Shown: one piece after another, positions 2,699 to 63,883 of the stretch
Numbering within the stretch: the stretch's first letter is position 1
How the letters are laid out: each line of letters begins with the position of its first letter
Virus record (IMG/VR): IMGVR_UViG_3300024239_000011
Coordinates: 479,036-543,035 of that record
DNA length: 64,000 bases
Strand: one strand, 5' to 3'
Made by a program: the position numbers and the translations under genes
The notes under the pieces: model-generated
Seen by the model: the letters and a program-made list of their open reading frames with translations, nothing else
Told to the model about the DNA's origin: nothing
Database searches by the model: none

Positions 2699-3344
2699 TA
2701 ACGGTGGGGCGAAATGTGGGGCGAATCACTTCTGCTTTTTTTGGTGCAGCAGGCTCATGGAATTCGAATTGTACGAACCAGTGCGGGCGTTGGTCAATTT
2801 TATCCTTGTTACGTGGACGCACATCACGGGTGGTCGCATCAGGACGCATCCACCATGAATGTTCAAAGTACCGACGCGGACCAAGCCACTCTTCTGCCGT
2901 GGGAAGGTAGGCAACCGCGTCACCACCGAAGGTGAATTCCAGACCACCCGTATCGCTAGTCATTTGGACAATACCAAAGTGAACTCCCCGCTCTGATATC
3001 GCATTCATTTTCGCCTGGAATACCATTGTCAGCCATTCTTCAGACGGCTCGAACGGACAAACGACGAGGTTATTTGCAGACTGACGGAACGCTTTGTCTG
3101 CCCATTTGTTATCAACAAAATAGAAGACGCTGTTACCAATAATATAGTCGAAGAAATAATCCACTTTGGCGAACGCAAGGTTCACGTCATTATCCCCTGC
3201 TTCCTCAGTCACGATGACTTCAGCTTTCAGGGTCCACAAGGTCGGGAAAATGTTGCGTCCAATCACCTTAATGCCGCGAAATTCGGTCTTATACGTAATG
3301 GAGAAATCGTCGCTCATATGTTGTCTTTCTTTCGATAGTACCAT
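2673..3344 (-). CDS. Hypothetical protein (start probably 3317)
   Basis: Long ORF below a TATAAATA box at 3481-3488. Confidence 0.7.
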   Translation of the reverse strand: MVLSKERQHMSDDFSITYKTEFRGIKVIGRNIFPTLWTLKAEVIVTEEAGDNDVNLAFAKVDYFFDYIIGNSVFYFVDNKWADKAFRQSANNLVVCPFEPSEEWLTMVFQAKMNAISERGVHFGIVQMTSDTGGLEFTFGGDAVAYLPTAEEWLGPRRYFEHSWWMRPDATTRDVRPRNKDKIDQRPHWFVQFEFHEPAAPKKAEVIRPTFRPTVIDGTKKDD

Positions 3345-3510
3345 GGCGTGTAGCTCAAGGGACAGATGTCGTCATGATCAAACCGCGTGTCGAAATCGAC
3401 GGCTGGTGAACGGGGAAAGACCCATACAGATTAGCTGGACACAAAATGGTAGTTTTGCGTAACCCATTGCCTATTATCTGTATTTATAGGGTGTTTGTCC
3501 TGTCACTATA

Positions 3511-3762
3511 TCAGCCTTTAATCTCGAAATCCTTGCGGGCTTTCTCCATCTTCAACGCACGCTCTTTTTCTTGACGTTCCATTTCCTTACGGAGACGGTC
3601 GTTCGCTAAATCATAGAGTTCATTGGCCAGCATTCGAAGCTGGTTAATCATTTGCGTGTTCCCTGTCCCTTGAGCATACACCATACGCTTGTTTAGTTCA
3701 GAGATTTTTTCATGGATTTTGTCGATACTGAGGTTAGTCAAGTCCTCATTATGTTCTGCCAT
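3511..3762 (-). CDS. Small coiled-coil hypothetical protein
   Basis: MAEHNEDLTNLSIDKIHEKISELNKRM..., heptad-like. Confidence 0.6.
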   Translation of the reverse strand: MAEHNEDLTNLSIDKIHEKISELNKRMVYAQGTGNTQMINQLRMLANELYDLANDRLRKEMERQEKERALKMEKARKDFEIKG

Positions 3763-3817
3763 CCAAATCTCTGCCAAAAACGGATGCAGCATTTTGCACC
3801 TCCCCGTCAACTTAAAA

Positions 3818-3904
3818 CCACTAAATAAGAACGGTAATCGAATCGGACCAACGATTCGAAACCTTCGCGGAGACAAAGGCTGTCCCGTTCTCTATTTAGC
3901 GGAG
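3818..3904 (+). ncRNA. Endonuclease-leader three-way-junction RNA, copy A, with flanking inverted TAAATA boxes
   Basis: P1 AGAACGG/CCGUUCU, J UAAU, P2 CGAAUCG/CGAUUCG, J AAA, P3 CCUU/AAGG, J CUGUC. Homologous to copies at 37.3 and 63.7 kb. Confidence 0.75.
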
Positions 3905-3911
3905 AAAAATC

Positions 3912-4835
3912 ATGCCTAAGGGCAATCCCTTTACAACAGAAATGTTCATCGAGAAATGTCGCCATATTCATGGTGATCGTTATGATTATTCTCTAGTAGA
4001 GTATAAGAACGCACAGGAGAAGGTCAAAATTATTTGCCTCGCCCATGGTGTGTTTGTGATGTACGCGAAACATCATACACGTGGGCATGGATGTCCTGAA
4101 TGTGGTAAAATTTCTACAGGAAAGAAGAAAAGACTTGATTTGCCGGAATTTCTAACGAAAGCCAAATCAATTCACGGTGATCGGTATGATTATTCATTAG
4201 TCGTCTACGAGACTGCTAAAGTACCCGTTGAAATTATTTGTCCGATCCATGGAAGTTTCTGGCAAACCCCTGATTGTCACATTGGTTTAAAAGAATCAGG
4301 TTGTAGCAAATGCAGCGGTATGTTCAAAAAAGATACACAGTATTTTATCGAACAAGCTAAATTGATACATGGTGATACTTACGATTATTCAAAAGTTGTT
4401 TATCAAACCGTAAAAGATCAAGTAGAAATTATTTGTCGAATGCATGGAAGTTTTTTACAAACCCCGGATAGTCATCTAAATACAAAAAGTGGATGTCCGC
4501 GATGCGTTTCTCTAATATCTGATCAAGAAACTGCATGGTTAAATCATCTTGGAATCCCCAATGATCCCACTCATAGGCAGGTATATCTCAGGCTAGATGA
4601 TGGGTCGCGAATCCACGCAGACGGGTATGTTGCGTCAACTAATACCATTTATGAATATTATGGTGACTATTACCACGGGAACCCAAATGTGTATGATCAT
4701 CGAAAAATGAATACGACGTGTAAAAAGACCTTTGGTGAATTACACGAGCGTACCATAAAACGAGAAGAACGGATATTACGCTCCGGGTACAAGCTTGTAA
4801 CTATGTGGGAAGCACAATGGAAGAGTGGCGGCTAA
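3912..4835 (+). CDS. Free-standing putative homing endonuclease: three Zn-binding repeats plus a PD-(D/E)xK/Vsr-like domain
   Basis: Three FIxKA..IHGDxYDYS.V.Y....V.IICxxHG.F.Q....H....GCxxC repeats; C-terminal IHADGY...YEYYGDYYHG...LVTMWE. Confidence 0.75.
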   Translation: MPKGNPFTTEMFIEKCRHIHGDRYDYSLVEYKNAQEKVKIICLAHGVFVMYAKHHTRGHGCPECGKISTGKKKRLDLPEFLTKAKSIHGDRYDYSLVVYETAKVPVEIICPIHGSFWQTPDCHIGLKESGCSKCSGMFKKDTQYFIEQAKLIHGDTYDYSKVVYQTVKDQVEIICRMHGSFLQTPDSHLNTKSGCPRCVSLISDQETAWLNHLGIPNDPTHRQVYLRLDDGSRIHADGYVASTNTIYEYYGDYYHGNPNVYDHRKMNTTCKKTFGELHERTIKREERILRSGYKLVTMWEAQWKSGG

Positions 4836-15906: not shown

Positions 15907-15936
15907 TATTTATCCAGAGAGAGGGTTGCCTAAATA
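15907..15936. promoter_or_regulatory. Back-to-back T4-late-type promoter boxes (TAAATA on both strands)
   Basis: TATTTA 15907-15912 and TAAATA 15931-15936 in a 60-nt divergent intergenic gap. Confidence 0.7.
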
Positions 15937-22640: not shown

Positions 22641-22715
22641 GCTGCGGTGCCTCAATGGTACAGGACCGCTCTTGTAAAGCGGCATTTGGGGGTTCAAGTC
22701 CCTCCCGCAGCACCA
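22641..22715 (+). tRNA. tRNA-Thr(UGU)
   Basis: GCTGCGG/CCGCAGC acceptor, CCGCT-CTTGTAA-AGCGG anticodon arm, GTTCAAGTC T-loop, encoded CCA. Confidence 0.92.
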
Positions 22716-29018: not shown

Positions 29019-29416
29019 ACAGCACGCTCACGATGTAAGTCAATAGTGAGAGAGCGATATAAAAAGAAAACATATAGACGCCATATGCGACGTTTGTAGG
29101 CATAACGACCTCGTGATTGGATGTTGCATTGCAACATATTTACCGATGTTTGGTTATACGGAGCCATGCTAAATACGCATATGTATAATCCAGAAGAATT
29201 CCCCTATTGTGCCTACACATCATCCGGATCACTGGTATTCGAATATGCACGCCAAGATGGTAGTCATATCGAAGTGTTGGATCGTGGTCAGCTACGATAT
29301 TTCTTTGTGGATGATTTCGTATTGAAATTGAAGAAACGTGAAAATGATTCATCGACTGGATAAATCAAAAAAGATATTGCAGTCAGATGCTAAAGTTGCT
29401 AAATAGGTTTAGTTGT

Positions 29417-29727
29417 TCCGGCGTAGCTCAGTTGGTAGTAGCATCTGACTGTAGATATGCAGCTTCCATCAGTAATGATGGTCGAATAACTGGGTGAATT
29501 CGGGGAAACCCTAGTAATAGGGCAATCCCGAGCCAAGCCAGGGGAAGGTCGTGGTACCCTGGAAGGTGTAGAGACTAGGTGGTGAGGAACCAATCCAATA
29601 AACCACCCGCGAGCGCCCAGCACCCTAACAAGTAATGTTGAGGGTGATGATATAGTCCACTTCCGATAGTAATATCGGGTTAAGTGTAATCAGAGTGTCG
29701 CAGGTTCGAGTCCTGCCGCCGGAACCA
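29417..29727 (+). tRNA. tRNA-Asn(GUU) interrupted by a group I intron (exons 29417-29452, 29687-29727)
   Basis: Splicing restores TCTGA-CTGT|TAA-TCAGA; TCCGGCG/CGCCGGA acceptor, CCA end. Confidence 0.9.
29453..29686 (+). mobile_element. Group I intron (234 nt, no ORF)
   Basis: P GAATTCGGGGAA, Q AATCCCGAGC, R GTAGAGACTAGG, S GATGATATAGTCCA; terminal G; GNRA-capped P2 and P9. Confidence 0.9.
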
Positions 29728-29745
29728 ATTATCGAGATTTTACCA

Positions 29746-34850: not shown

Positions 34851-35125
34851 GCTTCCCGGATGGTGGCGCGACAGAACTGATCAACATCGGCAGCGACGTA
34901 TACGTGCGGGTAGTTCATGCCGTTCTTGTTGATCAGCAGGGTTTCCGGCTGCGCCATGGCGAGATCAGTGCTGGTCCCACCACCGGTAACATGGGTGAAT
35001 CGCATACCCGTCACCTTACAGAACTGGGTCTTGCTGGTCGTCGCCATGACGCAAGCACATTGAACAAGCTTGCCATCGATCAGGGCGTTGACCGAACCAG
35101 AAAAAACGCTGAGCTTGCGAGCCAT
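34847..35125 (-). CDS. Hypothetical early protein
   Basis: Promoter TTGACA-17-TATAGT at 35179-35151. Confidence 0.65.
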   Translation of the reverse strand: MARKLSVFSGSVNALIDGKLVQCACVMATTSKTQFCKVTGMRFTHVTGGGTSTDLAMAQPETLLINKNGMNYPHVYVAADVDQFCRATIREA

Positions 35126-35252
35126 GATGGTACCCCAATCAATTTCAATTACTATAACAGCTTTAGGGTGTATTGTCAATTTGCGGCCAAAGAATTTTTC
35201 TATTCTTTTCAAATCATGCTATACCGCAATGGGTTAGAGAGATTACTAGGTC

Positions 35253-36245
35253 ATGATCAAACCATATTTCAAAACGCAGAACGTCACATTGTACCACGCA
35301 GACAATCTGGGTGTGCTGGAAAATCTCTCATCCGAGAGTATCAACCTGATCTATTGCGATGTTCTTTACAACACCAAGAGTAAATTCGCAGACTACGTTG
35401 ATGACCTCGGAAGTCCACAAGAGGCAGTGGAGTGGTACCGGGCACGGTTTGAGCATATGCATCGAGTGTTGCGCAACGACGGCAGTATTTACATCCACTG
35501 CGATTGGCACCTCTCTGACTATCTGAAGGTATTGTTGGATGAGATATTCGGGTTTGCAAACTTCCGAAACCGGCTCATCCGCATCCAGTGTACTGCCAAG
35601 AACAATGGGTCGAACTGGGGTCGGGTCTACGACGAAATCCTGTACTTCGTGAAGAGCAAAAACTTCACATGGAACACCCCGCACGAACCGAAGATCGACG
35701 GCAAGCTTGCCCAGCAGTACAACAAGCTGGACGCCAATGGACGTGCCTATACGACGATCTCCCTGAATGCGAAGGGCGAGCGGAAAGGCGAAACCGGGCG
35801 CCCGTGGAACAGCGCAAGTCATGGCGTTGTCGAATTGCCCAAGGGGCGCCATTGGACGACCATGCATGCCGAACTTGAAGCCTTGGATAAGGCAGGGTTG
35901 GTCGAGTGGAGCAAGAACAACGTTCCTCGCAAGATCGCCTATGCGGATGAAAGCATCGACCAGAAGTGTCAGAACATCCTTGACCTAAAAAGCGTCGGCA
36001 AAGAGTCGTCGTACTTCGATGACGTGTATGACACCCAGAAACCGATTGAACTCTTGGACAAGATCATCAGCGCATCGAGTAATCCCGGTGATGTGGTTGC
36101 GGACTTTTTCATGGGGAGCGGAACCACCGCAGTTGCCGCGTTGGCGGGTGGGCGCAAATTCATCGGCTGCGACATCAGTTTGCGGTCACTTCAGATGACC
36201 CAAAGTCGGATAGATGCTGGTGGTAATGATCTGTTTGAATGGTGA
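35253..36245 (+). CDS. Beta-class N6A/N4C DNA methyltransferase
   Basis: Motif IV-like IYCDVLY, LRNDGSIYIHCD, YDTQKP, VVADFFMGSGTT (FxGxG). Confidence 0.9.
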   Translation: MIKPYFKTQNVTLYHADNLGVLENLSSESINLIYCDVLYNTKSKFADYVDDLGSPQEAVEWYRARFEHMHRVLRNDGSIYIHCDWHLSDYLKVLLDEIFGFANFRNRLIRIQCTAKNNGSNWGRVYDEILYFVKSKNFTWNTPHEPKIDGKLAQQYNKLDANGRAYTTISLNAKGERKGETGRPWNSASHGVVELPKGRHWTTMHAELEALDKAGLVEWSKNNVPRKIAYADESIDQKCQNILDLKSVGKESSYFDDVYDTQKPIELLDKIISASSNPGDVVADFFMGSGTTAVAALAGGRKFIGCDISLRSLQMTQSRIDAGGNDLFEW

Positions 36246-36306
36246 AAAAATTATTGACCCGGACAAAACGTCGGTGATAAATAGTCCTCAGAAGTTGGAA
36301 CTAGAC

Positions 36307-36386
36307 GATCACTTCAGTAGCTCAACGGTAGAGCAAAAGTATGATAAACTTTCCGTGCGGTTCAAATCCGCCAGTGATTTTCACCA
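36307..36386 (+). pseudogene. Degenerate tRNA-Ile(GAU)-like element
   Basis: Intact D arm (GCTC/GAGC), AAAGT-ATGATAA-ACTTT anticodon arm and GGTTCAAATCC T arm, but the acceptor stem GATCACT/AGTGATT is offset by 4 extra nt, with extra nt before ACCA. Confidence 0.6.
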
Positions 36387-36407
36387 TCACCGACTTCTAA
36401 TCCCTAT

Positions 36408-36484
36408 GGACCCTTAGCTTAGTGGTCGAAAGCGCCGGTCTCATAAACCGGGGATCGTTGGTTCGAATCCAACAGGGTCTACCA
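36408..36484 (+). tRNA. tRNA(CAU), Ile2-like
   Basis: GGACCCT/AGGGTCT acceptor with C4-G69 and C5-G68, CCGGT-CTCATAA-ACCGG, A73, CCA. Lacks the initiator hallmarks. Confidence 0.85.
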
Positions 36485-37303
36485 AATCACGGGGTGCGAG
36501 AAATCTAGCACCCCGTTTGCTATTCCGGCGATGTCTTCTGCACGCAAAACTGCTAATTTCCCGCCCATTGCTTTCCATTTGCACTGGTCGCGATCCGGCT
36601 GATGTTGATGCCCTTTGACCTCGATATAGAGGTCGTATTCCGGTAGGTAAAAATCTGGAAAGTAGTGTCTCGTAGTACCGTTCCAAATATATGGTATTGG
36701 TTCTATTTGATTAGTCCATGTAATGCCACATGCATCAAGTAGTTTCGCAGTATACAGTTCCCATTTCCCGGTCAGGATGGAATTCCCGTAGTAAATTTTC
36801 TTGACCCGACCGTTAACATTTGCTGCACAATATGACGATGGATATTTCTCCACCGTTTGACGCATGTAACGACTGTGGATTTGCCGTCTTTCGGTAGTCC
36901 AAAACGTCTCGGATGCTTTCCGCGCACTGGCGGACAACTTAGCTCGCGTTTCTGCACTGATTTCTACGGTACGCCCTTCTTCGACTGCCTTTGTATGCTG
37001 GTTGCCATGGTGTCCATGTTTGTTGAAACATGCTCGACAACAATATTTCGGCTCTGGCTTTTGCGGTCGGATAATAGCTTCGAATGTTTTCCCACATACA
37101 CACACGGTGTGTTTTCGATGGTATTTGTGGTCTTGGCTGCGATTGGGGTTTAACCCGGCATTGGTTAATGCATCATTCCACGACCCGAACCGTTTTTTGT
37201 AGGTCGATGCGTTGGTAAAGTCACGCATGGCGGGTGTCCGTCCATGTTCTGCGTGAAATGCACAAAGTGCGGCCAATAATTCTTGATCTGTGATTTTGCA
37301 CAT
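36479..37303 (-). CDS. Free-standing putative homing endonuclease (HE-associated repeat, Zn finger, TnsA-like PD-(D/E)xK)
   Basis: TPAMRDF...YKKRFGSWNDAL..AGL; CVCGK..CCRAC; YFPDFYLPEYDLYIEVKG; start MCKITD at 37303 with RBS GGAGA. Confidence 0.8.
   Translation of the reverse strand: MCKITDQELLAALCAFHAEHGRTPAMRDFTNASTYKKRFGSWNDALTNAGLNPNRSQDHKYHRKHTVCVCGKTFEAIIRPQKPEPKYCCRACFNKHGHHGNQHTKAVEEGRTVEISAETRAKLSASARKASETFWTTERRQIHSRYMRQTVEKYPSSYCAANVNGRVKKIYYGNSILTGKWELYTAKLLDACGITWTNQIEPIPYIWNGTTRHYFPDFYLPEYDLYIEVKGHQHQPDRDQCKWKAMGGKLAVLRAEDIAGIANGVLDFSHPVIW
36489..36518 (+). terminator. Hairpin terminator after the tRNA pair
   Basis: ACGGGGTGC/GCACCCCGT followed by TT. Confidence 0.6.
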
Positions 37304-37310
37304 GATATTT

Positions 37311-37403
37311 CTCCCGATAAATAGCCCGGCGGGACAGCCCTCTCTCCCGAGGGGTTTTGTTGGTGTTCCCGCACCAACGATTACCGCCATTCCTATTTAT
37401 CGG
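37311..37403 (-). ncRNA. Endonuclease-leader three-way-junction RNA, copy B
   Basis: P1 GGCGG/CCGCC, UAAU, P2 GUUGGUG/CACCAAC, AAA, P3 CCCCUC-GGGA-GAGAGGG, CUGUC; flanked by the CCGATAAATAG inverted repeat. Confidence 0.75.
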
Positions 37404-37413
37404 AGTCTGATAG

Positions 37414-38121
37414 ATGACGTTGGCATTTGATGCTATTGCGGTGCGTCGTTATGTGGACGAAACTATCATTCGCCCGCATGTTTACGAAGACTCTGGGCGT
37501 CCAAAGCTCGAAACCGACCCATGTTATTTTCATTATATAGACGCTATGTGTTTTATATCGCGGGTATCGGAAGGGTTGGACATCATCGCGAACGGGTTTT
37601 CCGATGAAGACATACGTCCATTCACAACCGCACGCGATTTTTACAAGGCATTGGTTGGTAAGCTTCCGCTAACTTTTTATGCTCAGTTGGATGGCGCCAA
37701 TAAACTGCTCAAATTGTCCACGGACGATACAACCGGGAAAGAAATCACTATTGGTTCCCGGCGGTATTGGATGGTCGAAAATATTCGCGACCAAGTGCCG
37801 TATCCGTCTGCGGCGAGCCGGGCAAATGTTTACGAGCGTATCATCAAGTGTGTAACTCGGGATATGTCGGCTCGTTCCCAGATGGGCGACCAAGGCTGGT
37901 TTGATGGTATTGAAGACGCCATTCGTCGGCTCGATCAGTCAATCAAAGACACTGCTGATTTTGTGTTCCAAACTCTGACCGGTATTGACCCAAACAAGGT
38001 CATGGTGTCGATAAACGAGGATGGTACATATAATCGGTTGGTTCCTTATTTGGTCAACCGCGATGCAACGATTTCCCCATATGTAAGCAATGGACATCGG
38101 TTAATCGCCTATGAGTTTTGA
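37414..38121 (+). CDS. Hypothetical protein
   Basis: 235 aa ORF. Confidence 0.7.
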   Translation: MTLAFDAIAVRRYVDETIIRPHVYEDSGRPKLETDPCYFHYIDAMCFISRVSEGLDIIANGFSDEDIRPFTTARDFYKALVGKLPLTFYAQLDGANKLLKLSTDDTTGKEITIGSRRYWMVENIRDQVPYPSAASRANVYERIIKCVTRDMSARSQMGDQGWFDGIEDAIRRLDQSIKDTADFVFQTLTGIDPNKVMVSINEDGTYNRLVPYLVNRDATISPYVSNGHRLIAYEF

Positions 38122-38122
38122 T

Positions 38123-38266
38123 ATGACCCTAGATGAAGCTATCCAGCACGCTGAAGAAGTTGCCGCCGAATGCGGCTCTTGTGCTGACGAACATCGTCAA
38201 CTCGCCATATGGTTGCGTGAATTAAAGCGGAGACGCGACAATGACATGCCCGTTCCACCATTGTGA
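38123..38266 (+). CDS. Small hypothetical protein (47 aa)
   Basis: MTLDEAIQHAEEVA..C..CADEHRQLAIWLRELK. Confidence 0.55.
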   Translation: MTLDEAIQHAEEVAAECGSCADEHRQLAIWLRELKRRRDNDMPVPPL

Positions 38267-38705
38267 ATACATTGCATCCGAGGAAACGGTTGATTGGTTG
38301 TTTGGCGCCACGCGAGATTGGGATAATCCTCCCTCGCGAGAGAAGATCATTGAAGATTTGAAAGACCCTTGTAATCACATCAATTATCTATACCCACATG
38401 TGTTCAAAACATGTAATACAATGGTGTCCCGTCCCCCGTGGTTGCCAAGGAGTTCGAGAGTGAAAATCGAGTACGGTAATGGGGCAACTGAGTATGGTCC
38501 CGGTATCAACATTCATTTAACAGGCGCCGAAGTCGCGACCGCAATTGATGCGTGGCTGGTTGCGCACGGCATTCATGTCAGCGGTCCCCGAACGGTAACC
38601 GTAAACGGTGAACTTTGCGGCATCGGTAAAGTCTACGTTGATCCGAGTGGGTTCGTCATCGCTGATGGGAAGCGTTTTTCTGGACGTGGGGAAAGTGATG
38701 TCTGA
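38241..38705 (+). CDS. Hypothetical protein
   Basis: 154 aa ORF. Confidence 0.55.
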   Translation: MTCPFHHCEYIASEETVDWLFGATRDWDNPPSREKIIEDLKDPCNHINYLYPHVFKTCNTMVSRPPWLPRSSRVKIEYGNGATEYGPGINIHLTGAEVATAIDAWLVAHGIHVSGPRTVTVNGELCGIGKVYVDPSGFVIADGKRFSGRGESDV

Positions 38706-38910
38706 CTGGGCAAACATCGGGCTGACTATTGTCGCCTTGGCGTTTCTATTTTTCGTCTTGATCCCGTTGGTTCGCCGGGCCATAGGCAGCATGTCCGACA
38801 ATCGATGTGATGTTTGCCCGTATCGGAACCGAGATAATGACAAGTCTACATGGACAACCATCATTGAACCCCGAAAAGAGGTATCTCGTCGCCGTATCCG
38901 GCGGGGTTGA
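38698..38910 (+). CDS. Small membrane protein
   Basis: MSDWANIGLTIVALAFLFFVLIPLV transmembrane helix. Confidence 0.5.
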   Translation: MSDWANIGLTIVALAFLFFVLIPLVRRAIGSMSDNRCDVCPYRNRDNDKSTWTTIIEPRKEVSRRRIRRG

Positions 38911-39778
38911 TTCGGTCGCCTTACTGCACTGGATGCAAGACCGTGGACTTGCTCATGGGGTTGTTCATGTGGACCACATGTTGCGCGATGAATCGGCGGC
39001 TGATGCCGCGTTCGTCCGTGAGTTGACCCGTTCCCTCGCCTTACCGTATTTCGAGAAGCAGATTGACGTATACGCCTATTGCAAGGGCGACCGTCGTAGT
39101 ATCGAAGACGGGGCGCGAGAGGTACGTCGGGCATTTATCAACGAGGTCATGGCGGCTTTTCACTATGATTACGTCGTTCTCGGTCATCACGCCGACGATC
39201 AAGCGGAAACAATCCTGAACAATATCCTGCGCGGTCCTTCAGTGTTGGGTTTGGCAGGGATGTTGGCGGTTGATGACGAGAGCCGTATCGTTCGTCCGTT
39301 CATCCGCATGCCAAAAGAACGTCTGATCGAATACGCCGTTGAACATGGACTGTCGTGGGTTGAGGATGCGACCAACCACGAAGAAGCCTATGACCGTAAC
39401 TGGCTGCGCAACAACGTGATCCCGGCGATTGAAGAGCGCCGTCCATTACGACAGGTACTTTCGCGGAAAACCGCGTACTTTCAAGCGTTGGCAGGCTTTC
39501 TTGAAGACCAGACCGGCGAGTGGATGAAGACCCACTACGATGAGGGATTTTATCGAGGGGATTTTCTGGCGCTCCATCCGTTTATGCGCGGAGAAGTGCT
39601 TGGATGGTTGTGGAAGGCGTACCACGGCACTAAGAACGGGTTTTCAGAAACGGTGGTAGCCGAGGTAAGCCGCTGGCTTGACGGCAATCCCCAAGGTGGA
39701 AGCAAAATCGCCTTCGGTCGTTTTAGACTGACCATCCGCAAACACCGTGTCACCAAAGACGAAAAGAAAACGGGCTGA
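38807..39778 (+). CDS. tilS: tRNA(Ile)-lysidine synthetase (start uncertain, 38807-38863)
   Basis: VAVSGGVDS PP-loop, HVDHMLR, EDGAREVR, GHHADDQAET, IVRP, EDATN, RNWLR. Confidence 0.92.
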   Translation: MMFARIGTEIMTSLHGQPSLNPEKRYLVAVSGGVDSVALLHWMQDRGLAHGVVHVDHMLRDESAADAAFVRELTRSLALPYFEKQIDVYAYCKGDRRSIEDGAREVRRAFINEVMAAFHYDYVVLGHHADDQAETILNNILRGPSVLGLAGMLAVDDESRIVRPFIRMPKERLIEYAVEHGLSWVEDATNHEEAYDRNWLRNNVIPAIEERRPLRQVLSRKTAYFQALAGFLEDQTGEWMKTHYDEGFYRGDFLALHPFMRGEVLGWLWKAYHGTKNGFSETVVAEVSRWLDGNPQGGSKIAFGRFRLTIRKHRVTKDEKKTG

Positions 39779-47276: not shown

Positions 47277-47379
47277 GTGAACATCCTTTTGGGATATTTA
47301 TTCCCAGATCGTTAGGCACAATACAACCCAGTGGTTGTTATGTCAAGTAGTGGCAGCGTTATATTTGCTAAATACCTCC

Positions 47380-49690: not shown

Positions 49691-49874
49691 GGTAGCATAT
49701 CTCCTTCGTTGTGCCTGTCATCGTATTTATCTTAGATGGTTTACACTTGTCAACTATCAAGTCCGGTTTGACCCTAGGCACGAAAAAGCCACCAAACCCA
49801 AGGGCTGGGTTTGTCCCTCTTGCGTTTCACCATAAACGGATAAATACTGCTTTAAGATGATTGAGGGCATTAGT

Positions 49875-50469: not shown

Positions 50470-53274
50470 ATGTCCGACAATTTTAACGTCCTGCTGCCGA
50501 AGACTGCTTTCCCACTCCACCGCAAGCCTGCGGATGAGGTGGCAATCCTCGTGCAGATGGAAACTCACCACAAGGACATGAGCCAGGACAGCGTTCAGGA
50601 CGCCCCGGTGTTTGTGTTGCATGATGGACCGCCATATGCAAACGGCGATATCCACATCGGGCATGCGCTGAACAAGATTCTCAAGGACATCGTGGTTCGG
50701 TCGCAATACGCACTCGGGCACAAGATTGATTTTCGCCCTGGTTGGGATTGCCATGGGCTACCTATCGAATGGAAAGTCGAGGAAGAGTGGCGCAAGGCGA
50801 AGAAAGACCCGCGTGCTGACGTGGTGGCTTTTCGTGCCGATTGCCGCGCTTACGCTCAACGTTGGCTCAATATTCAGCGCGAGCAGTTCAAGCGTCTGGG
50901 TGTTGCCGCCAATTGGGACAATCCCTACACAACCATGGCGTATGCGCACGAAGCGCAGATCGTTTCGGAACTGCACACGATTGCCAAGAGTGGCGCATTG
51001 TATCAGGGTTACAAACCCGTTATGTGGTCGCCGGTCGAAAAAACCTCTTTGGCGGAAGCTGAAGTCGAATACGAGAACGTGACCACTACCAGCGCCTATG
51101 TCGCCTTTAAGGTCGATGGCGAGGGAATGACGATCTGTGGTTCGCCCGTCCATATGCTGATCTGGACCACCACCCCGTGGACCCTGCCTGGAAACGAAGC
51201 TGTCGCGTTCTCGCCATCGGTTTATTACACGATGCTTCGCAAGGTCGTGGATGGTGAAACGTCCTACTTCGTCGTGGCGGCTGACCGTGCCGACGAATTG
51301 TGTAAGCTTGGTCTGGACAGATTCGGGGATGACTCGTGGTTGCCAAATTGTGGCTCTTGGTTCCGCGACAATATCAAATTAGTCCACCCGCTGTCTGGTA
51401 AGACCGTGCCTCTACTGCCTGCGGATTTTGTGACCGCCGAAACGGGCACGGGTTTGGTTCATATCGCGCCCGGTCATGGCAAAGATGATTTTGACCTGGG
51501 TCAGCGTCACAACCTCCCGATCTACAGTGTTGTTGATGACAACGGCTGCATGACGGACGCTGCCCCGGAAGGTGTGTGCGGGTTGCACGTCTACAAGGCG
51601 AGCGAAGCCGTGCTGGCGGTATTAGGTGATGCGCTGGTAGCAACCAAGACGCTGACCCATGAATACCCGCATTCCTGGCGGTCGAAGAAGCCGGTGATCT
51701 ATAAGGTCGCCCCGCAGTGGTTCATCCATGTGGGTGACGACCTGAAGGAAACCGTGCGTAAGGAACTGAATAACGTCGAGTTCTTCCCGCCGCAGGGTCG
51801 CAACCGTATCACCTCCATGGTGGAAAGCCGTGGTGACTGGTGTGTGTCGCGTCAGCGCATGTGGGGCGTTCCCATGATGCTGCTGGTCCGTGATGACGGT
51901 AAGTTGATGGGTCATGAACCCGACGACAATGCCTTGTGTCGAGGGATCGAATTCTTTGAGGCGCGAGCTTCGGAGTTCAATGAGTGGGTGGTGGCTCGCA
52001 TCAACGCCGAGGGCTGTGATTGGTGGCTCACCGAGAGCGTCGAAGAAATCACCCATCGCATGAACGTCGAAACTGGCAGCGGGTGGTTCCTGGCGGGTGA
52101 GCATGCTCGGTTCACCAAGGTGACCGACGTGTTGGACGTGTGGTTTGACTCGGGCTGCACCCATGCGTTCGCCATCAAGGATCGGGCAAATCTTTATCTG
52201 GAAGGGTCTGACCAGCATCGTGGTTGGTTCCAGTCCAGCCTTCTGGAGTCGGTGCTGACCACCGGGCGGGCGCCTTACGATGCGCTGCTGACCCACGGTT
52301 TCGTTCTCGACCATAAGGGCGAGAAGATGTCGAAATCCAAGGGTAACGTCGTACATCCCGAAGATGTGATCAAAAAGCACGGTGTTGATGTGCTGCGTCT
52401 ATGGGTTGCCGCGTCCAACTACCATGATGATCTGCGTATCGGTGATCAGATCATGGAACGGGTGGCGGATTCCTATAAGCGCATTCGCAACACCCTGAAA
52501 TGGTTGCTTGGCAATCTGCGAGATCATGACGGTGGGCGTTTCATCCAGTACGACACCCTACCGTCGCTGGAAAAGTACGTCCTGCATCACGTTGTGACGA
52601 CGAACGAAATCGTGAAGAAGGCGTATCGCGAATACGACTTCAACACGGTCTACCGTGCCGTGTACGGGTTCTGCAACGAGGTGCTGTCGTCGCTCTACTT
52701 CGACATCCGTAAGGATCGTCTGTATTGCGACGGTGCGAATGATCCAGCGCGTGAGCAAACTATGGCGGTGTTGGAACTGGTGACCGACAATCTGTTGGGT
52801 TGGTTGGCTCCGATCACGCCGTTTGCCGTTACCGAAGCGACGCCGCTGTTCTATGGCGAGCAGTACGACCAGTCCATCCATCGTTTGGTTGACCTTCCTA
52901 TGGAATGGCAAGATCACGCACTTGCGTCCCATTGGGACATGGCGTTGACGGTGCGTGCGAAGGTTTTGGAGGCGGTTGAACGCAAACGGAAGCCGAAGGA
53001 CGAGCGTGGACCTGATGACATTGGTGCGTCGTTGGAAGCTTCGGTATTCGCAACGCTGAGCCAAAATTACATGGATGCGCTAAAAGACATCGATATGGCG
53101 GAAGTGTGCATCGTGTCGCACTTCGATGTGAACAGGTCGGTAGGTGCGCAGCCCGAAGGCATCGAGATCACAGTCCACCGCGCTAAGGGGCACAAATGTG
53201 CCCGATGCTGGAAGGTGGTTCCGGATATTGAACATCTTTGTGATCGCTGTGCGGCGGTCGAAGGGGAGAATTGA
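50470..53274 (+). CDS. ileS: Isoleucyl-tRNA synthetase (type 1, C-terminal Zn finger)
   Basis: DGPPYANGDIHIGH, GWDCHGLPIE, WTTTPWTL, GTGLVHIAPGHG, DWCVSRQR, EGSDQHRGWF, KMSKS, KCARCW..LCDRC; sigma70 promoter at 50408. Confidence 0.97.
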   Translation: MSDNFNVLLPKTAFPLHRKPADEVAILVQMETHHKDMSQDSVQDAPVFVLHDGPPYANGDIHIGHALNKILKDIVVRSQYALGHKIDFRPGWDCHGLPIEWKVEEEWRKAKKDPRADVVAFRADCRAYAQRWLNIQREQFKRLGVAANWDNPYTTMAYAHEAQIVSELHTIAKSGALYQGYKPVMWSPVEKTSLAEAEVEYENVTTTSAYVAFKVDGEGMTICGSPVHMLIWTTTPWTLPGNEAVAFSPSVYYTMLRKVVDGETSYFVVAADRADELCKLGLDRFGDDSWLPNCGSWFRDNIKLVHPLSGKTVPLLPADFVTAETGTGLVHIAPGHGKDDFDLGQRHNLPIYSVVDDNGCMTDAAPEGVCGLHVYKASEAVLAVLGDALVATKTLTHEYPHSWRSKKPVIYKVAPQWFIHVGDDLKETVRKELNNVEFFPPQGRNRITSMVESRGDWCVSRQRMWGVPMMLLVRDDGKLMGHEPDDNALCRGIEFFEARASEFNEWVVARINAEGCDWWLTESVEEITHRMNVETGSGWFLAGEHARFTKVTDVLDVWFDSGCTHAFAIKDRANLYLEGSDQHRGWFQSSLLESVLTTGRAPYDALLTHGFVLDHKGEKMSKSKGNVVHPEDVIKKHGVDVLRLWVAASNYHDDLRIGDQIMERVADSYKRIRNTLKWLLGNLRDHDGGRFIQYDTLPSLEKYVLHHVVTTNEIVKKAYREYDFNTVYRAVYGFCNEVLSSLYFDIRKDRLYCDGANDPAREQTMAVLELVTDNLLGWLAPITPFAVTEATPLFYGEQYDQSIHRLVDLPMEWQDHALASHWDMALTVRAKVLEAVERKRKPKDERGPDDIGASLEASVFATLSQNYMDALKDIDMAEVCIVSHFDVNRSVGAQPEGIEITVHRAKGHKCARCWKVVPDIEHLCDRCAAVEGEN

Positions 53275-62421: not shown

Positions 62422-63726
62422 TCAACAGCTTAGCAAGACATTGACAAAGATAACGTCCCCGGAGGAAAATTCCTGATTGGAATGATCGTCGGACGACACT
62501 GTTGTATGAGAAATAGAAACACGGTAATCCTCGTACAATTGTTCGAGTGTTTTCCCACATTGTGTCATTTTGGACTGATTTTTAGATGCGGGTAGCATTT
62601 GAAGATTAGTCCAGTGCGCAATGATTTCTGGTGGTACCCCGTTTCGAAATCCTTCCGCCTTTGAGAAAATGTGATCCAAGTGGTTTTCGCGATTGCGCGG
62701 AAGCCTATCTGGATTGATTTTATAGTAATGATCACGAAAAGATTTGTTGGTTAATGACGTAACCAAGTCACAGTATCGGCGCCAAGGGTCTTTAAGGGAT
62801 GGATCGGTCCACTCCCCATTATTGATTCTCGCCGTGGCAATTTTCGCCAACACTATTGGAGAACGGCTAGGATTATCAACTCCATATTTTTCTAGGTAAG
62901 CTTCAATTTTCTTATGATGTATACGGTCGTATTCGTCAGGCGTTTTCGATCTCCATGTTGCGGCATTTTTATCTTTAACCGGTTGTGCGCTCATGGGATG
63001 GGATGTGCCATAGTTCGCTTGCCATGTCGCTTTGGCTTTTTCATAAAATTCTGGCACTTGGAGTGGATTTGCAGTGCCGTATTTTTCAAGCATGGTGCGA
63101 CGAGCTTTCGACATGTCTTGTGGGTTGCCATTAGGGTTTCCGCCTTTACCATACCCACAGTATGGACATCCGTGACCTCGCATATGATGTCCTGCTTGTT
63201 GTTCAAACATACCATGCTTTTGACATATAATTTTTACCTTGTTATGGTTGCCAGTATAGTCCACTAATGAATATTCGTACTCATCACCATGTACTTCTTT
63301 AGCTTTTTCTATGAAACTTTCATTGGTATGCGCAATGTTCTTTCCGTAACATTTTTGGCAGCCAGAACCATTAAGATGATTTCCGGCAAGTTGTTCAAAC
63401 ACGCCATGGTGCCGACAGGTGATTTTTACTTTCTTATGGCGACTGGTATAGACGGTATTTTGATAATCGTATTCATCGCCATGTACAACTTGTGCTTTCT
63501 GAATAAATTGTTCGGTGGTCATTCCTATTTTTTGTTCTTGCGCACATTTATTACAACCATTACCACGCAGATGTGAATATGGAACCTGCTCGAACATTCC
63601 ATGTTGAGGGCATATAATCTGTATTTTGGTTGTACTGTTTTTATAGACGGTTTCTGTATAAGAATACGTATTACCGTGGCGCGCTTTCGCGAGCGCGATG
63701 AATTCTTCTGTGGATTTTATAGCCAT
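62422..63726 (-). CDS. Free-standing putative homing endonuclease: Zn repeats, KYG-x-NP repeats, HNH-like C-terminus
   Basis: Three FI.KA..VHG..YDY...IICxxHG.FEQ....H..G.GC repeats; KYGTANP/KYGVDNP; NHLDHIFS...WTNLQML...N..K. Confidence 0.8.
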   Translation of the reverse strand: MAIKSTEEFIALAKARHGNTYSYTETVYKNSTTKIQIICPQHGMFEQVPYSHLRGNGCNKCAQEQKIGMTTEQFIQKAQVVHGDEYDYQNTVYTSRHKKVKITCRHHGVFEQLAGNHLNGSGCQKCYGKNIAHTNESFIEKAKEVHGDEYEYSLVDYTGNHNKVKIICQKHGMFEQQAGHHMRGHGCPYCGYGKGGNPNGNPQDMSKARRTMLEKYGTANPLQVPEFYEKAKATWQANYGTSHPMSAQPVKDKNAATWRSKTPDEYDRIHHKKIEAYLEKYGVDNPSRSPIVLAKIATARINNGEWTDPSLKDPWRRYCDLVTSLTNKSFRDHYYKINPDRLPRNRENHLDHIFSKAEGFRNGVPPEIIAHWTNLQMLPASKNQSKMTQCGKTLEQLYEDYRVSISHTTVSSDDHSNQEFSSGDVIFVNVLLSC

Positions 63727-63735
63727 TTATTTCCT

Positions 63736-63822
63736 GCAATAAATAGAGACGTGGGACAGCCCAGGTTCCTGTGCCGGGTTTTTCGGTGTTGGACGCACCG
63801 AAATTACCACCTCTATTTATCC
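63736..63822 (-). ncRNA. Endonuclease-leader three-way-junction RNA, copy C
   Basis: P1 GUGG/CCAC, UAAU, P2 UUCGGUG/CACCGAA, AAA, P3 CCCGG/CUGGG, CUGUC; flanked by the ATAAATAGAG/CTCTATTTAT inverted repeat. Confidence 0.75.
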
Positions 63823-63883
63823 AAATGTGGCATTGACATTGAGTGTTTTTATTGCTACGTTGTAGCAAATCATAGGAGACGCC

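Follow-up and report, generated by a model that had tools for sequence, protein, structure and literature searches.

A conserved, putatively two-way leader cassette with facing late-promoter-type boxes precedes selfish nuclease genes in a 543-kb phage and in uncultured phages

Selfish nuclease genes of a 543,035-bp phage genome, and of dozens of uncultured phages, are preceded by a conserved control cassette of about 95 bases, in which two facing late-promoter-type boxes flank a predicted three-way junction supported by covariation. The analysis started from the last 64 kb of this genome (positions 479,036 to 543,035 of IMG/VR virus record IMGVR_UViG_3300024239_000011, rated 100% complete), a stretch of 64,000 nucleotides hereafter called the window, and from its interval 37311-37403. 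This interval is one (B) of six copies of the cassette, of which A, B and C lie in the window and D, E and F elsewhere in the genome. On the nuclease-sense strand the cassette reads TAAATA, N5-8, GGTAAT, hairpin P2, AAAC, hairpin P3, GGCTGTCCC, N, TATTTA, ribosome site, ATG. Copy B lies between two divergent genes; on the nuclease strand it consists of CTCCGATAAATAG, about 70 nt, CTATTTATCGGGAG, a 7-nt spacer and ATG. The features identified in the window are as follows.

37311-37403, - strand: cassette copy B, with box, three-way junction, inverse box and ribosome site of nuclease B (covariance model hit 37311-37406, 60 bits, E 4e-12).
37394-37399, - strand: forward late-promoter box of B (TAAATA, read 37399-37394), aimed at the nuclease gene; the predicted start is 6 nt downstream, giving an RNA that begins GGCGGUAAU.
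37318-37323, + strand: reverse late-promoter box of B (TAAATA), aimed at neighbour gene 37414; on the nuclease strand it reads TATTTA (37323-37318) and forms the 3' arm.
37359-37378, - strand: hairpin P2 of B, 7-bp stem and 6-nt loop, present in the minimum-energy fold.
37338-37353, - strand: hairpin P3 of B; on the + strand it reads as a GC stem followed by TTTTGTT and is scored terminator-like.
37343-37350, - strand: P3-loop copy of the ribosome-site sequence, TCGGGAGA on the nuclease strand and TCTCCCGA on the + strand, a direct repeat of 37310-37317; the cognate loop/ribosome-site duplex is -14.5 kcal/mol.
37304-37317, - strand: translation initiation region of nuclease B, TCGGGAGA (SD GGGAG at 37315-37311) and a 7-nt spacer, followed by the ATG at 37303-37301.
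37331-37339, - strand: invariant GGCTGTCCC, holding the P3 closing GG, the junction strand CUGUC and the P1 closing CC.
37380-37385, - strand: invariant GGTAAT, the P1 closing GG plus junction strand UAAU.
36479-37303, - strand: nuclease gene B, 274 aa, with a homing-endonuclease-associated repeat (Pfam HNH_repeat, 1.9e-16) and a weak endonuclease-I-like C-terminus (Phage_endo_I, 3e-4).
37414-38121, + strand: divergent neighbour gene of B, 235 aa, without family match; its SD CGGAG (37401-37405) lies in the mirror arm.
3815-3905, + strand: cassette copy A (71.6 bits), boxes at 3822-3827 and 3893-3898, P3-loop copy GCGGAGA at 3867-3873, ribosome site GCGGAGA at 3899-3905.
3912-4835, + strand: nuclease gene A, 307 aa, with DUF723 repeats and treble-clef zinc fingers.
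63733-63826, - strand: cassette copy C (81.6 bits), boxes at 63819-63814 and 63745-63740, P3-loop copy CAGGAA at 63771-63766, ribosome site CAGGAA at 63736-63731.
62422-63726, - strand: nuclease gene C, 434 aa, with DUF7487 and treble-clef repeats.

An earlier note, made from the sequence alone, had described TAAATA and its inverse TATTTA as bracketing each of the leaders A, B and C within longer inverted repeats, with the 3' arm running into the Shine-Dalgarno in A and B and stopping just short of it in C. This observation is confirmed: all three inverted-repeat pairs are present, in A the inverse box runs into GCGGAG before ATG 3912, in B the arms CTCCGATAAATAG / CTATTTATCGGGAG include the SD, and in C the pairing fades before the AGGAA SD. 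The ATG of nuclease B is at 37303, not 37306. The note had missed that the sequence between the boxes is itself conserved (GGTAAT, AAAC, GGCTGTCCC), that it folds as a predicted three-way junction, that three more copies lie outside the window, and that the P3 loop repeats the ribosome-site sequence.

The boxes are more than chance occurrences. TAAATA is found 38 times in the window against 24.8 +/- 4 in shuffled sequences, with 0 of 100 shuffles reaching 38. Genome-wide, 8-mers containing TAAATA are the most enriched words upstream of genes (7-12 times), with a positional peak 20-40 nt before start codons. An alignment of 115 such sites gives the logo G, then A or C, then TAAATA, and a purine peak (A 0.54, G 0.23, C 0.03) at the sixth base after the box, matching the T4 late-promoter rule. 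Both boxes of all six copies fit this logo. The genome also encodes a gp55-family late sigma factor (phrog_234 match at genome 258623-258973, E 1.1e-20, with 0 of 14 control genomes matching), although a single-sequence search with T4 gp55 found nothing. Six of the seven face-to-face box pairs spaced 50-100 nt in the whole genome are this element, and the seventh, at genome 442411, is a chance pair inside or beside a gene. In contrast, the back-to-back TAAATA pairs at window 47295-47374, 49724-49846, 29137-29175 and 15907-15936 sit between divergent genes and are ordinary divergent late promoters without the junction element.

The three window copies align in one orientation relative to their nuclease gene. 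A pattern scan of IMG/VR returned many matches, of which 64 of 114 carry TAAATA just upstream. A covariance model built from 35 sequences finds exactly six copies in the genome, all with both boxes, and matched 60 places (33 distinct sequences) across the window, three loci of this genome (L001-L003) and 96 IMG/VR viral-contig loci. Two further GGCTGTCCC sites, at genome 172906 and 375944, have no element around them and are regarded as chance. A strict 26-base pattern hits 59 IMG/VR stretches, and none in 596 Gb of bacterial and archaeal genomes. Model searches of T4, Aeh1, KVP40, P-SSM2, Syn9 and S-PM2 gave no match, nor did megablast of the region or blastn of a family member against GenBank phages, the conserved blocks being too short for BLAST. 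A literature search for the 9-mer gave only unrelated hits.

Pair counts support a three-way junction (P1, P2, P3): 89.7% of cells pair against 69.9% in shuffles, the covariation score is 0.528 against 0.143 (0 of 500 shuffles reaching it), and slid controls give about 40%. Double changes are seen in all seven P2 pairs (97% of cells paired), four P1 pairs and three P3 pairs. The junction strands UAAU, AAA and CUGUC do not vary among the fetched sequences, which span 27% to 56% GC, and GGCTGTCCC is invariant in 33 of 33 distinct sequences, although the fetch pattern required these letters, so that part of this constancy is built in. Rfam contains no such family: no hit on the element was obtained at gathering thresholds in the window, or at E up to 1 in loci L001-L003. 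In agreement with this, hammerhead, twister-sister, pistol and hatchet cores were not matched.

The downstream genes are a mixed set of nucleases, including GIY-YIG/SegE-like, HNH, NUMOD3, Vsr-like/DUF559, DUF723, DUF7487 and TnsA-like proteins. In this genome, two TnpB paralogs (85% identical) also carry the cassette. These two TnpB (IS605 OrfB / Cas12f-like) units, L001 3119-4460 and L002 (genome 61119-62460 and about 191800-193145), are 83% identical in DNA; their homology starts exactly at the 5' box and ends about 70 nt past the stop codon, in a tail that looks like a guide-RNA scaffold, and the leader is therefore the left end of that unit. Their P2 hairpins are completely different, while the rest of the leader is nearly identical. 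The gene behind copy F (L003 about 3300-3677, genome about 404300-404677, - strand) is a 59-aa HNH start that stops and is followed by a run of NUMOD3-like repeats in another frame, i.e. a frameshifted or decaying HNH-NUMOD3 endonuclease that still keeps an intact leader.

Three further properties of the family were observed. First, the P3 loop carries a direct copy of the translation initiation region (TIR) of the nuclease, namely TCGGGAGA in B, GCGGAGA in A, CAGGAA in C and TCAGGAGT in F, whereas D and E have GCAGATG, which includes the start codon and has no SD. Across 35 members the longest shared word averages 7.5 nt (generally 6-10 nt) and is at least 6 nt in 34 of 35, against an average of 4.7 nt, with 16% at least 6 nt, in cross-paired controls. 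The copy tracks the start codon where no SD exists (D, E and members L063 and L104). Since the repeat is direct, the two copies cannot pair with each other, and no consistently placed complement was found on the sense strand. The natural partner is the opposite-strand RNA, whose P3 loop is complementary to the ribosome site by construction; predicted antisense-loop/TIR duplexes average -12.1 kcal/mol for cognate pairs and -6.2 for non-cognate pairs. A leader peptide starting from the ATG in the P3 loop of D was rejected, as the frame is not kept in E.

Secondly, the cassette and its gene usually lie antisense to the flanking phage genes. The upstream neighbour is divergent in A, B, C and E and in 24 of 28 callable family members, and both flanks are opposite in 12 of 18; this includes A and B. 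The cassette and its gene usually are inserted backwards into a co-directional phage gene array.

Finally, the two strands differ, albeit in tests that are modest and based on sequences related to one another. P3 mismatches are A-C in 13 cells and G-U in 5, and P3 is more stable on the antisense strand in 24 cases against 8, whereas the P2 and P1 wobble counts are neutral. The clean 5-bp stem with an open 8-10 nt loop forms mainly on the antisense strand, where the anti-TIR is 73% unpaired in the predicted hairpin. The commonest spacings are box-N5-GGTAAT on the forward strand and box-N7-GGGACAGCC on the reverse strand. With the inferred 6-nt start rule of this genome, the reverse RNA is predicted to start at the first base of the 4-bp covarying P1, while the forward RNA would start two bases inside it and lose half of this closing helix.

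The earlier note had interpreted the inverted repeats as a T4-type switch built from the promoter itself, in which the ribosome site is hidden on early read-through RNA and freed by late-promoter initiation, and had suggested that the reverse box could supply the displaced neighbour gene with a promoter, making the cassette insertion-neutral. This interpretation is only partly supported. Promoter-in-hairpin control is a documented precedent in I-TevI, I-TevII, I-TevIII and segB of the T4 family and in Aeh1 mobE, where a late promoter (TATAAATA) lies in the 5' arm of a leader hairpin upstream of a homing endonuclease gene and gives late-restricted expression (PMC2988022). In the present element the box likewise pairs with the inverse box in the minimum-energy folds of A-E, the box helix is 87% paired across 33 sequences, and the base before and after the boxes covaries (A-U 22, C-G 3, G-C 1). 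Predicted ribosome-site accessibility rises from long to short leader in B (0.35 to 0.54), D (0.05 to 0.59), E (0.31 to 0.52) and slightly in A, and in D the arms cover the start codon.

However, accessibility falls in C and is flat in F, and the difference is not significant across 35 members (0.47 against 0.53, p = 0.08). Pairing stops one base outside the boxes, the next column pair being unpaired in 21 of 33 sequences, and pairing of the 5' arm with the ribosome site, seen in B, D and E, is not seen across the family. With a divergent upstream gene, as in A, B and C, there is no evident source of the sense read-through RNA, whereas the T4-family hairpins are simple, cover the SD and sit inside co-directional early or middle transcription units. 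Two of the three defining features of that system fail here at family level. The present element also differs in its conserved three-way junction with invariant junction bases, its second facing box, its loop copy of the ribosome site and its mostly antisense orientation. Moreover, the switch explains neither the invariant junction bases nor the loop copy, and we consider it unlikely to be the main function of the element. A mirror-image switch acting on the ribosome sites of the neighbour genes of A, B and C is not supported either, as no consistent release was predicted and B goes the wrong way. The suggestion that the reverse box serves the displaced neighbour gains support from the orientation bias and from the lack of any other box before neighbour gene B.

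The comparison with empty alleles, named beforehand as a check, gave none. Four metagenome runs, all of DNA, were the only runs found to contain this phage; all four carry nuclease B and its leader unchanged, without joints. Across these runs, which come from one study, the 4.3-kb block at window 35445-39723 (tRNAs, nuclease B, cassette and three neighbour genes) shows no base substitutions, the only difference being one base left out at 38116 in two runs, whereas both flanks carry many substitutions (22 in 35088-35444, several after 39724). No relatives of neighbour gene B were found. A 56%-identical relative of a family member's neighbour gene (locus L136) lacks the cassette but is too distant to count as an empty allele; in place of the cassette, this distantly related phage has a 370-nt intergenic stretch after a TAAATA box (L136 2600-2965), which looks highly structured and GC-rich with many helices.

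We tentatively propose that the element is a portable, two-directional late-expression cassette that travels with selfish nuclease genes (homing endonucleases and TnpB) in phages using T4-type late promoters. In this model, the forward box would give late-only transcription of the nuclease, the antisense orientation keeping it out of early and middle messages of the host gene array. The reverse box would restart late transcription of the host gene displaced by the insertion, and this RNA, like any host read-through RNA, would begin with or contain the antisense junction. Its P3 hairpin would display a 6-10 nt loop complementary to the ribosome site of the nuclease; as the reverse promoter lies between them, the reverse RNA does not physically overlap this site and could therefore damp nuclease translation in trans. 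The loop must then co-vary with the ribosome site, which is what is seen. In some copies (B, D, E) any long sense RNA would also hide the ribosome site by arm pairing as in T4 I-TevI, as a local addition rather than the core feature of the family. The anatomy, family, covariation, loop copy, orientation and spacing are established from sequence, while every transcript, including its start, and every regulatory effect is inferred.

Several points weigh against this model. A consensus-grade reverse box is present in six of six copies here and in most family members, but it is degenerate in five members that keep the loop copy, for which the reverse promoter cannot be the only source of antisense RNA. 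Both promoters would be late, so that the benefit of a simultaneous antisense RNA is unclear. On the antisense strand P3 is followed by 3-5 U, which could terminate the reverse RNA before it reaches the neighbour gene, although only B is scored terminator-like. Finally, the invariant junction bases suggest a specific protein, ligand or tertiary fold that the model does not explain.

Such invariance of GGUAAU, AAAC and GGCUGUCCC from 27% to 56% GC, with covarying stems, is typical of junction-centred functional RNAs, and with no Rfam family matching, a new class is not excluded. The sense-strand junction could accordingly be a cis-acting structured RNA, e.g. a binding site for a conserved phage or host protein, a small-ligand sensor, a stabilizing 5' structure or a self-cleaving motif, with the SD-like P3 loop as a ribosome standby or decoy site. 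We consider this unlikely, since with the commonest N5 spacing the predicted forward start would remove the two covarying P1 pairs from the sense late RNA, P3 folds better on the other strand, and a ribosome or protein would not require the flanking bases, or SD-less start codons, to be copied. In addition, P2 loops fall into two mirror-image classes, one ending in CAA and the other starting with TTG, and two tandem cassette-plus-nuclease paralogs in one 5.9-kb contig (L032 1067-1163 and 3431-3527) differ in the leader almost only by an inverted P2 loop (CTTCCAA against TTGGGAG). A sense-only constraint would not tolerate this inversion, which is otherwise unexplained.

Alternatively, the cassette could matter mainly as DNA, as a portable promoter module whose conserved blocks and inverted repeats promote recombinational shuffling or capture of nuclease genes. 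One leader fronts at least eight unrelated nuclease families, the TnpB homology starts exactly at the 5' box, tandem copies occur in L032, and the P2 loop inversion shows hairpin-level DNA rearrangement. The PeSL promoter-stem-loop cassettes of T4-type phages (PMC2839356, PMC4122927) provide a precedent, being short conserved modules repeated in hyperplastic regions and linked with gain and loss of accessory genes. PeSLs, however, combine an early sigma-70-type promoter with a terminator and act as recombination sites, whereas the present cassette has late-type boxes in both directions and a three-way junction, is tied specifically to nuclease genes, and has no sigma-70-like site called inside it; a terminator-like call was made only for B, on the antisense strand. 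The stems keep pairing while changing sequence, which points to selection on a folded strand and not on homology, the identical blocks of 4-9 nt are too short for efficient homologous exchange, and this reading does not explain why loop and ribosome site change together. We therefore regard it as very unlikely.

Hairpins upstream of free-standing endonucleases in metagenomic 'fractured genes' (Dassa et al. 2009, PMC2677866) probably represent the same or a sister family, judging from their description rather than from motif sequences. Such 5'-UTR hairpins were reported in 15 of 16 endonuclease loci, ten of them with TATAAATA, and two conserved motifs pair in the stem; Vsr-like and GIY-YIG endonucleases from T4-like marine phages are among the genes. 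They were described as a simple translational hairpin, and the text reports no three-way junction, reverse promoter, loop copy of the ribosome site or TnpB association. The endonuclease genes in that study overlap the start of the downstream gene part by 6-69 bp and so are co-directional with it. A functional analogue is IS10 pIN/pOUT, in which face-to-face promoters give overlapping 5' ends and the hairpin antisense RNA-OUT uses its loop to attack the ribosome site of the transposase message (RNA-IN). In IS10 the antisense RNA physically overlaps the ribosome site, whereas here the complementarity is supplied by a duplicated word in a loop, and the reverse transcript may also be the messenger of the neighbour gene. 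Another analogue is CfrI of cyanophage S-PM2 (Millard et al. 2010, cited in PMC2984593), an experimentally detected antisense RNA running opposite a homing endonuclease gene in a T4-like phage; it is about 225 nt long, overlaps the gene and psbA, and has no described junction fold.

At 50470-53274 (+), 36311-36484 and 22641-22715 the window holds an isoleucyl-tRNA-synthetase-like gene (934 aa), tRNA-Met, a weaker tRNA-like hit (Rfam 39.7 bits, not called by ARAGORN) and tRNA-Thr, which fits a huge phage with its own translation parts. At 29398-29745 (+), a tRNA gene with anticodon GTA (Tyr by reading), not called by ARAGORN, is split in its anticodon loop by a group I intron (Rfam RF00028, 84.7 bits, 29391-29679); its 3' exon ends in CCGGAACCA near 29737, and a late-type box GCTAAATAG sits just upstream at 29398-29406.

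Homing endonucleases and TnpB nucleases must be kept from harming the phage that carries them, and the only well-studied solution is the T4 promoter-in-hairpin switch. In our reading, the present element is a different solution that appears to be widespread, in the form of a conserved folded module with promoter-type boxes in both directions and a loop that tracks the ribosome site of whatever nuclease it serves. At its furthest, which we consider unlikely although the possibility is real, the cassette would be a reprogrammable antisense 'domestication kit', attached to unrelated homing endonucleases and to TnpB across diverse uncultured phages, in which one RNA both restores the displaced host gene and, through a junction-scaffolded loop, specifically represses its own nuclease, and in which the invariant junction may be a new protein-binding or catalytic RNA core. 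The covariance model, or the pattern TAAATA-N5-GGTAAT...AAAC...GGCTGTCCC, provides a searchable marker for selfish nuclease cassettes in uncultured phage genomes, and the cassette links TnpB to the regulatory habits of homing endonucleases. If the model holds, it would offer a compact natural design for orthogonal, sequence-programmed translational control, and it explains how a nuclease gene can insert backwards into a phage operon without silencing the gene behind it.
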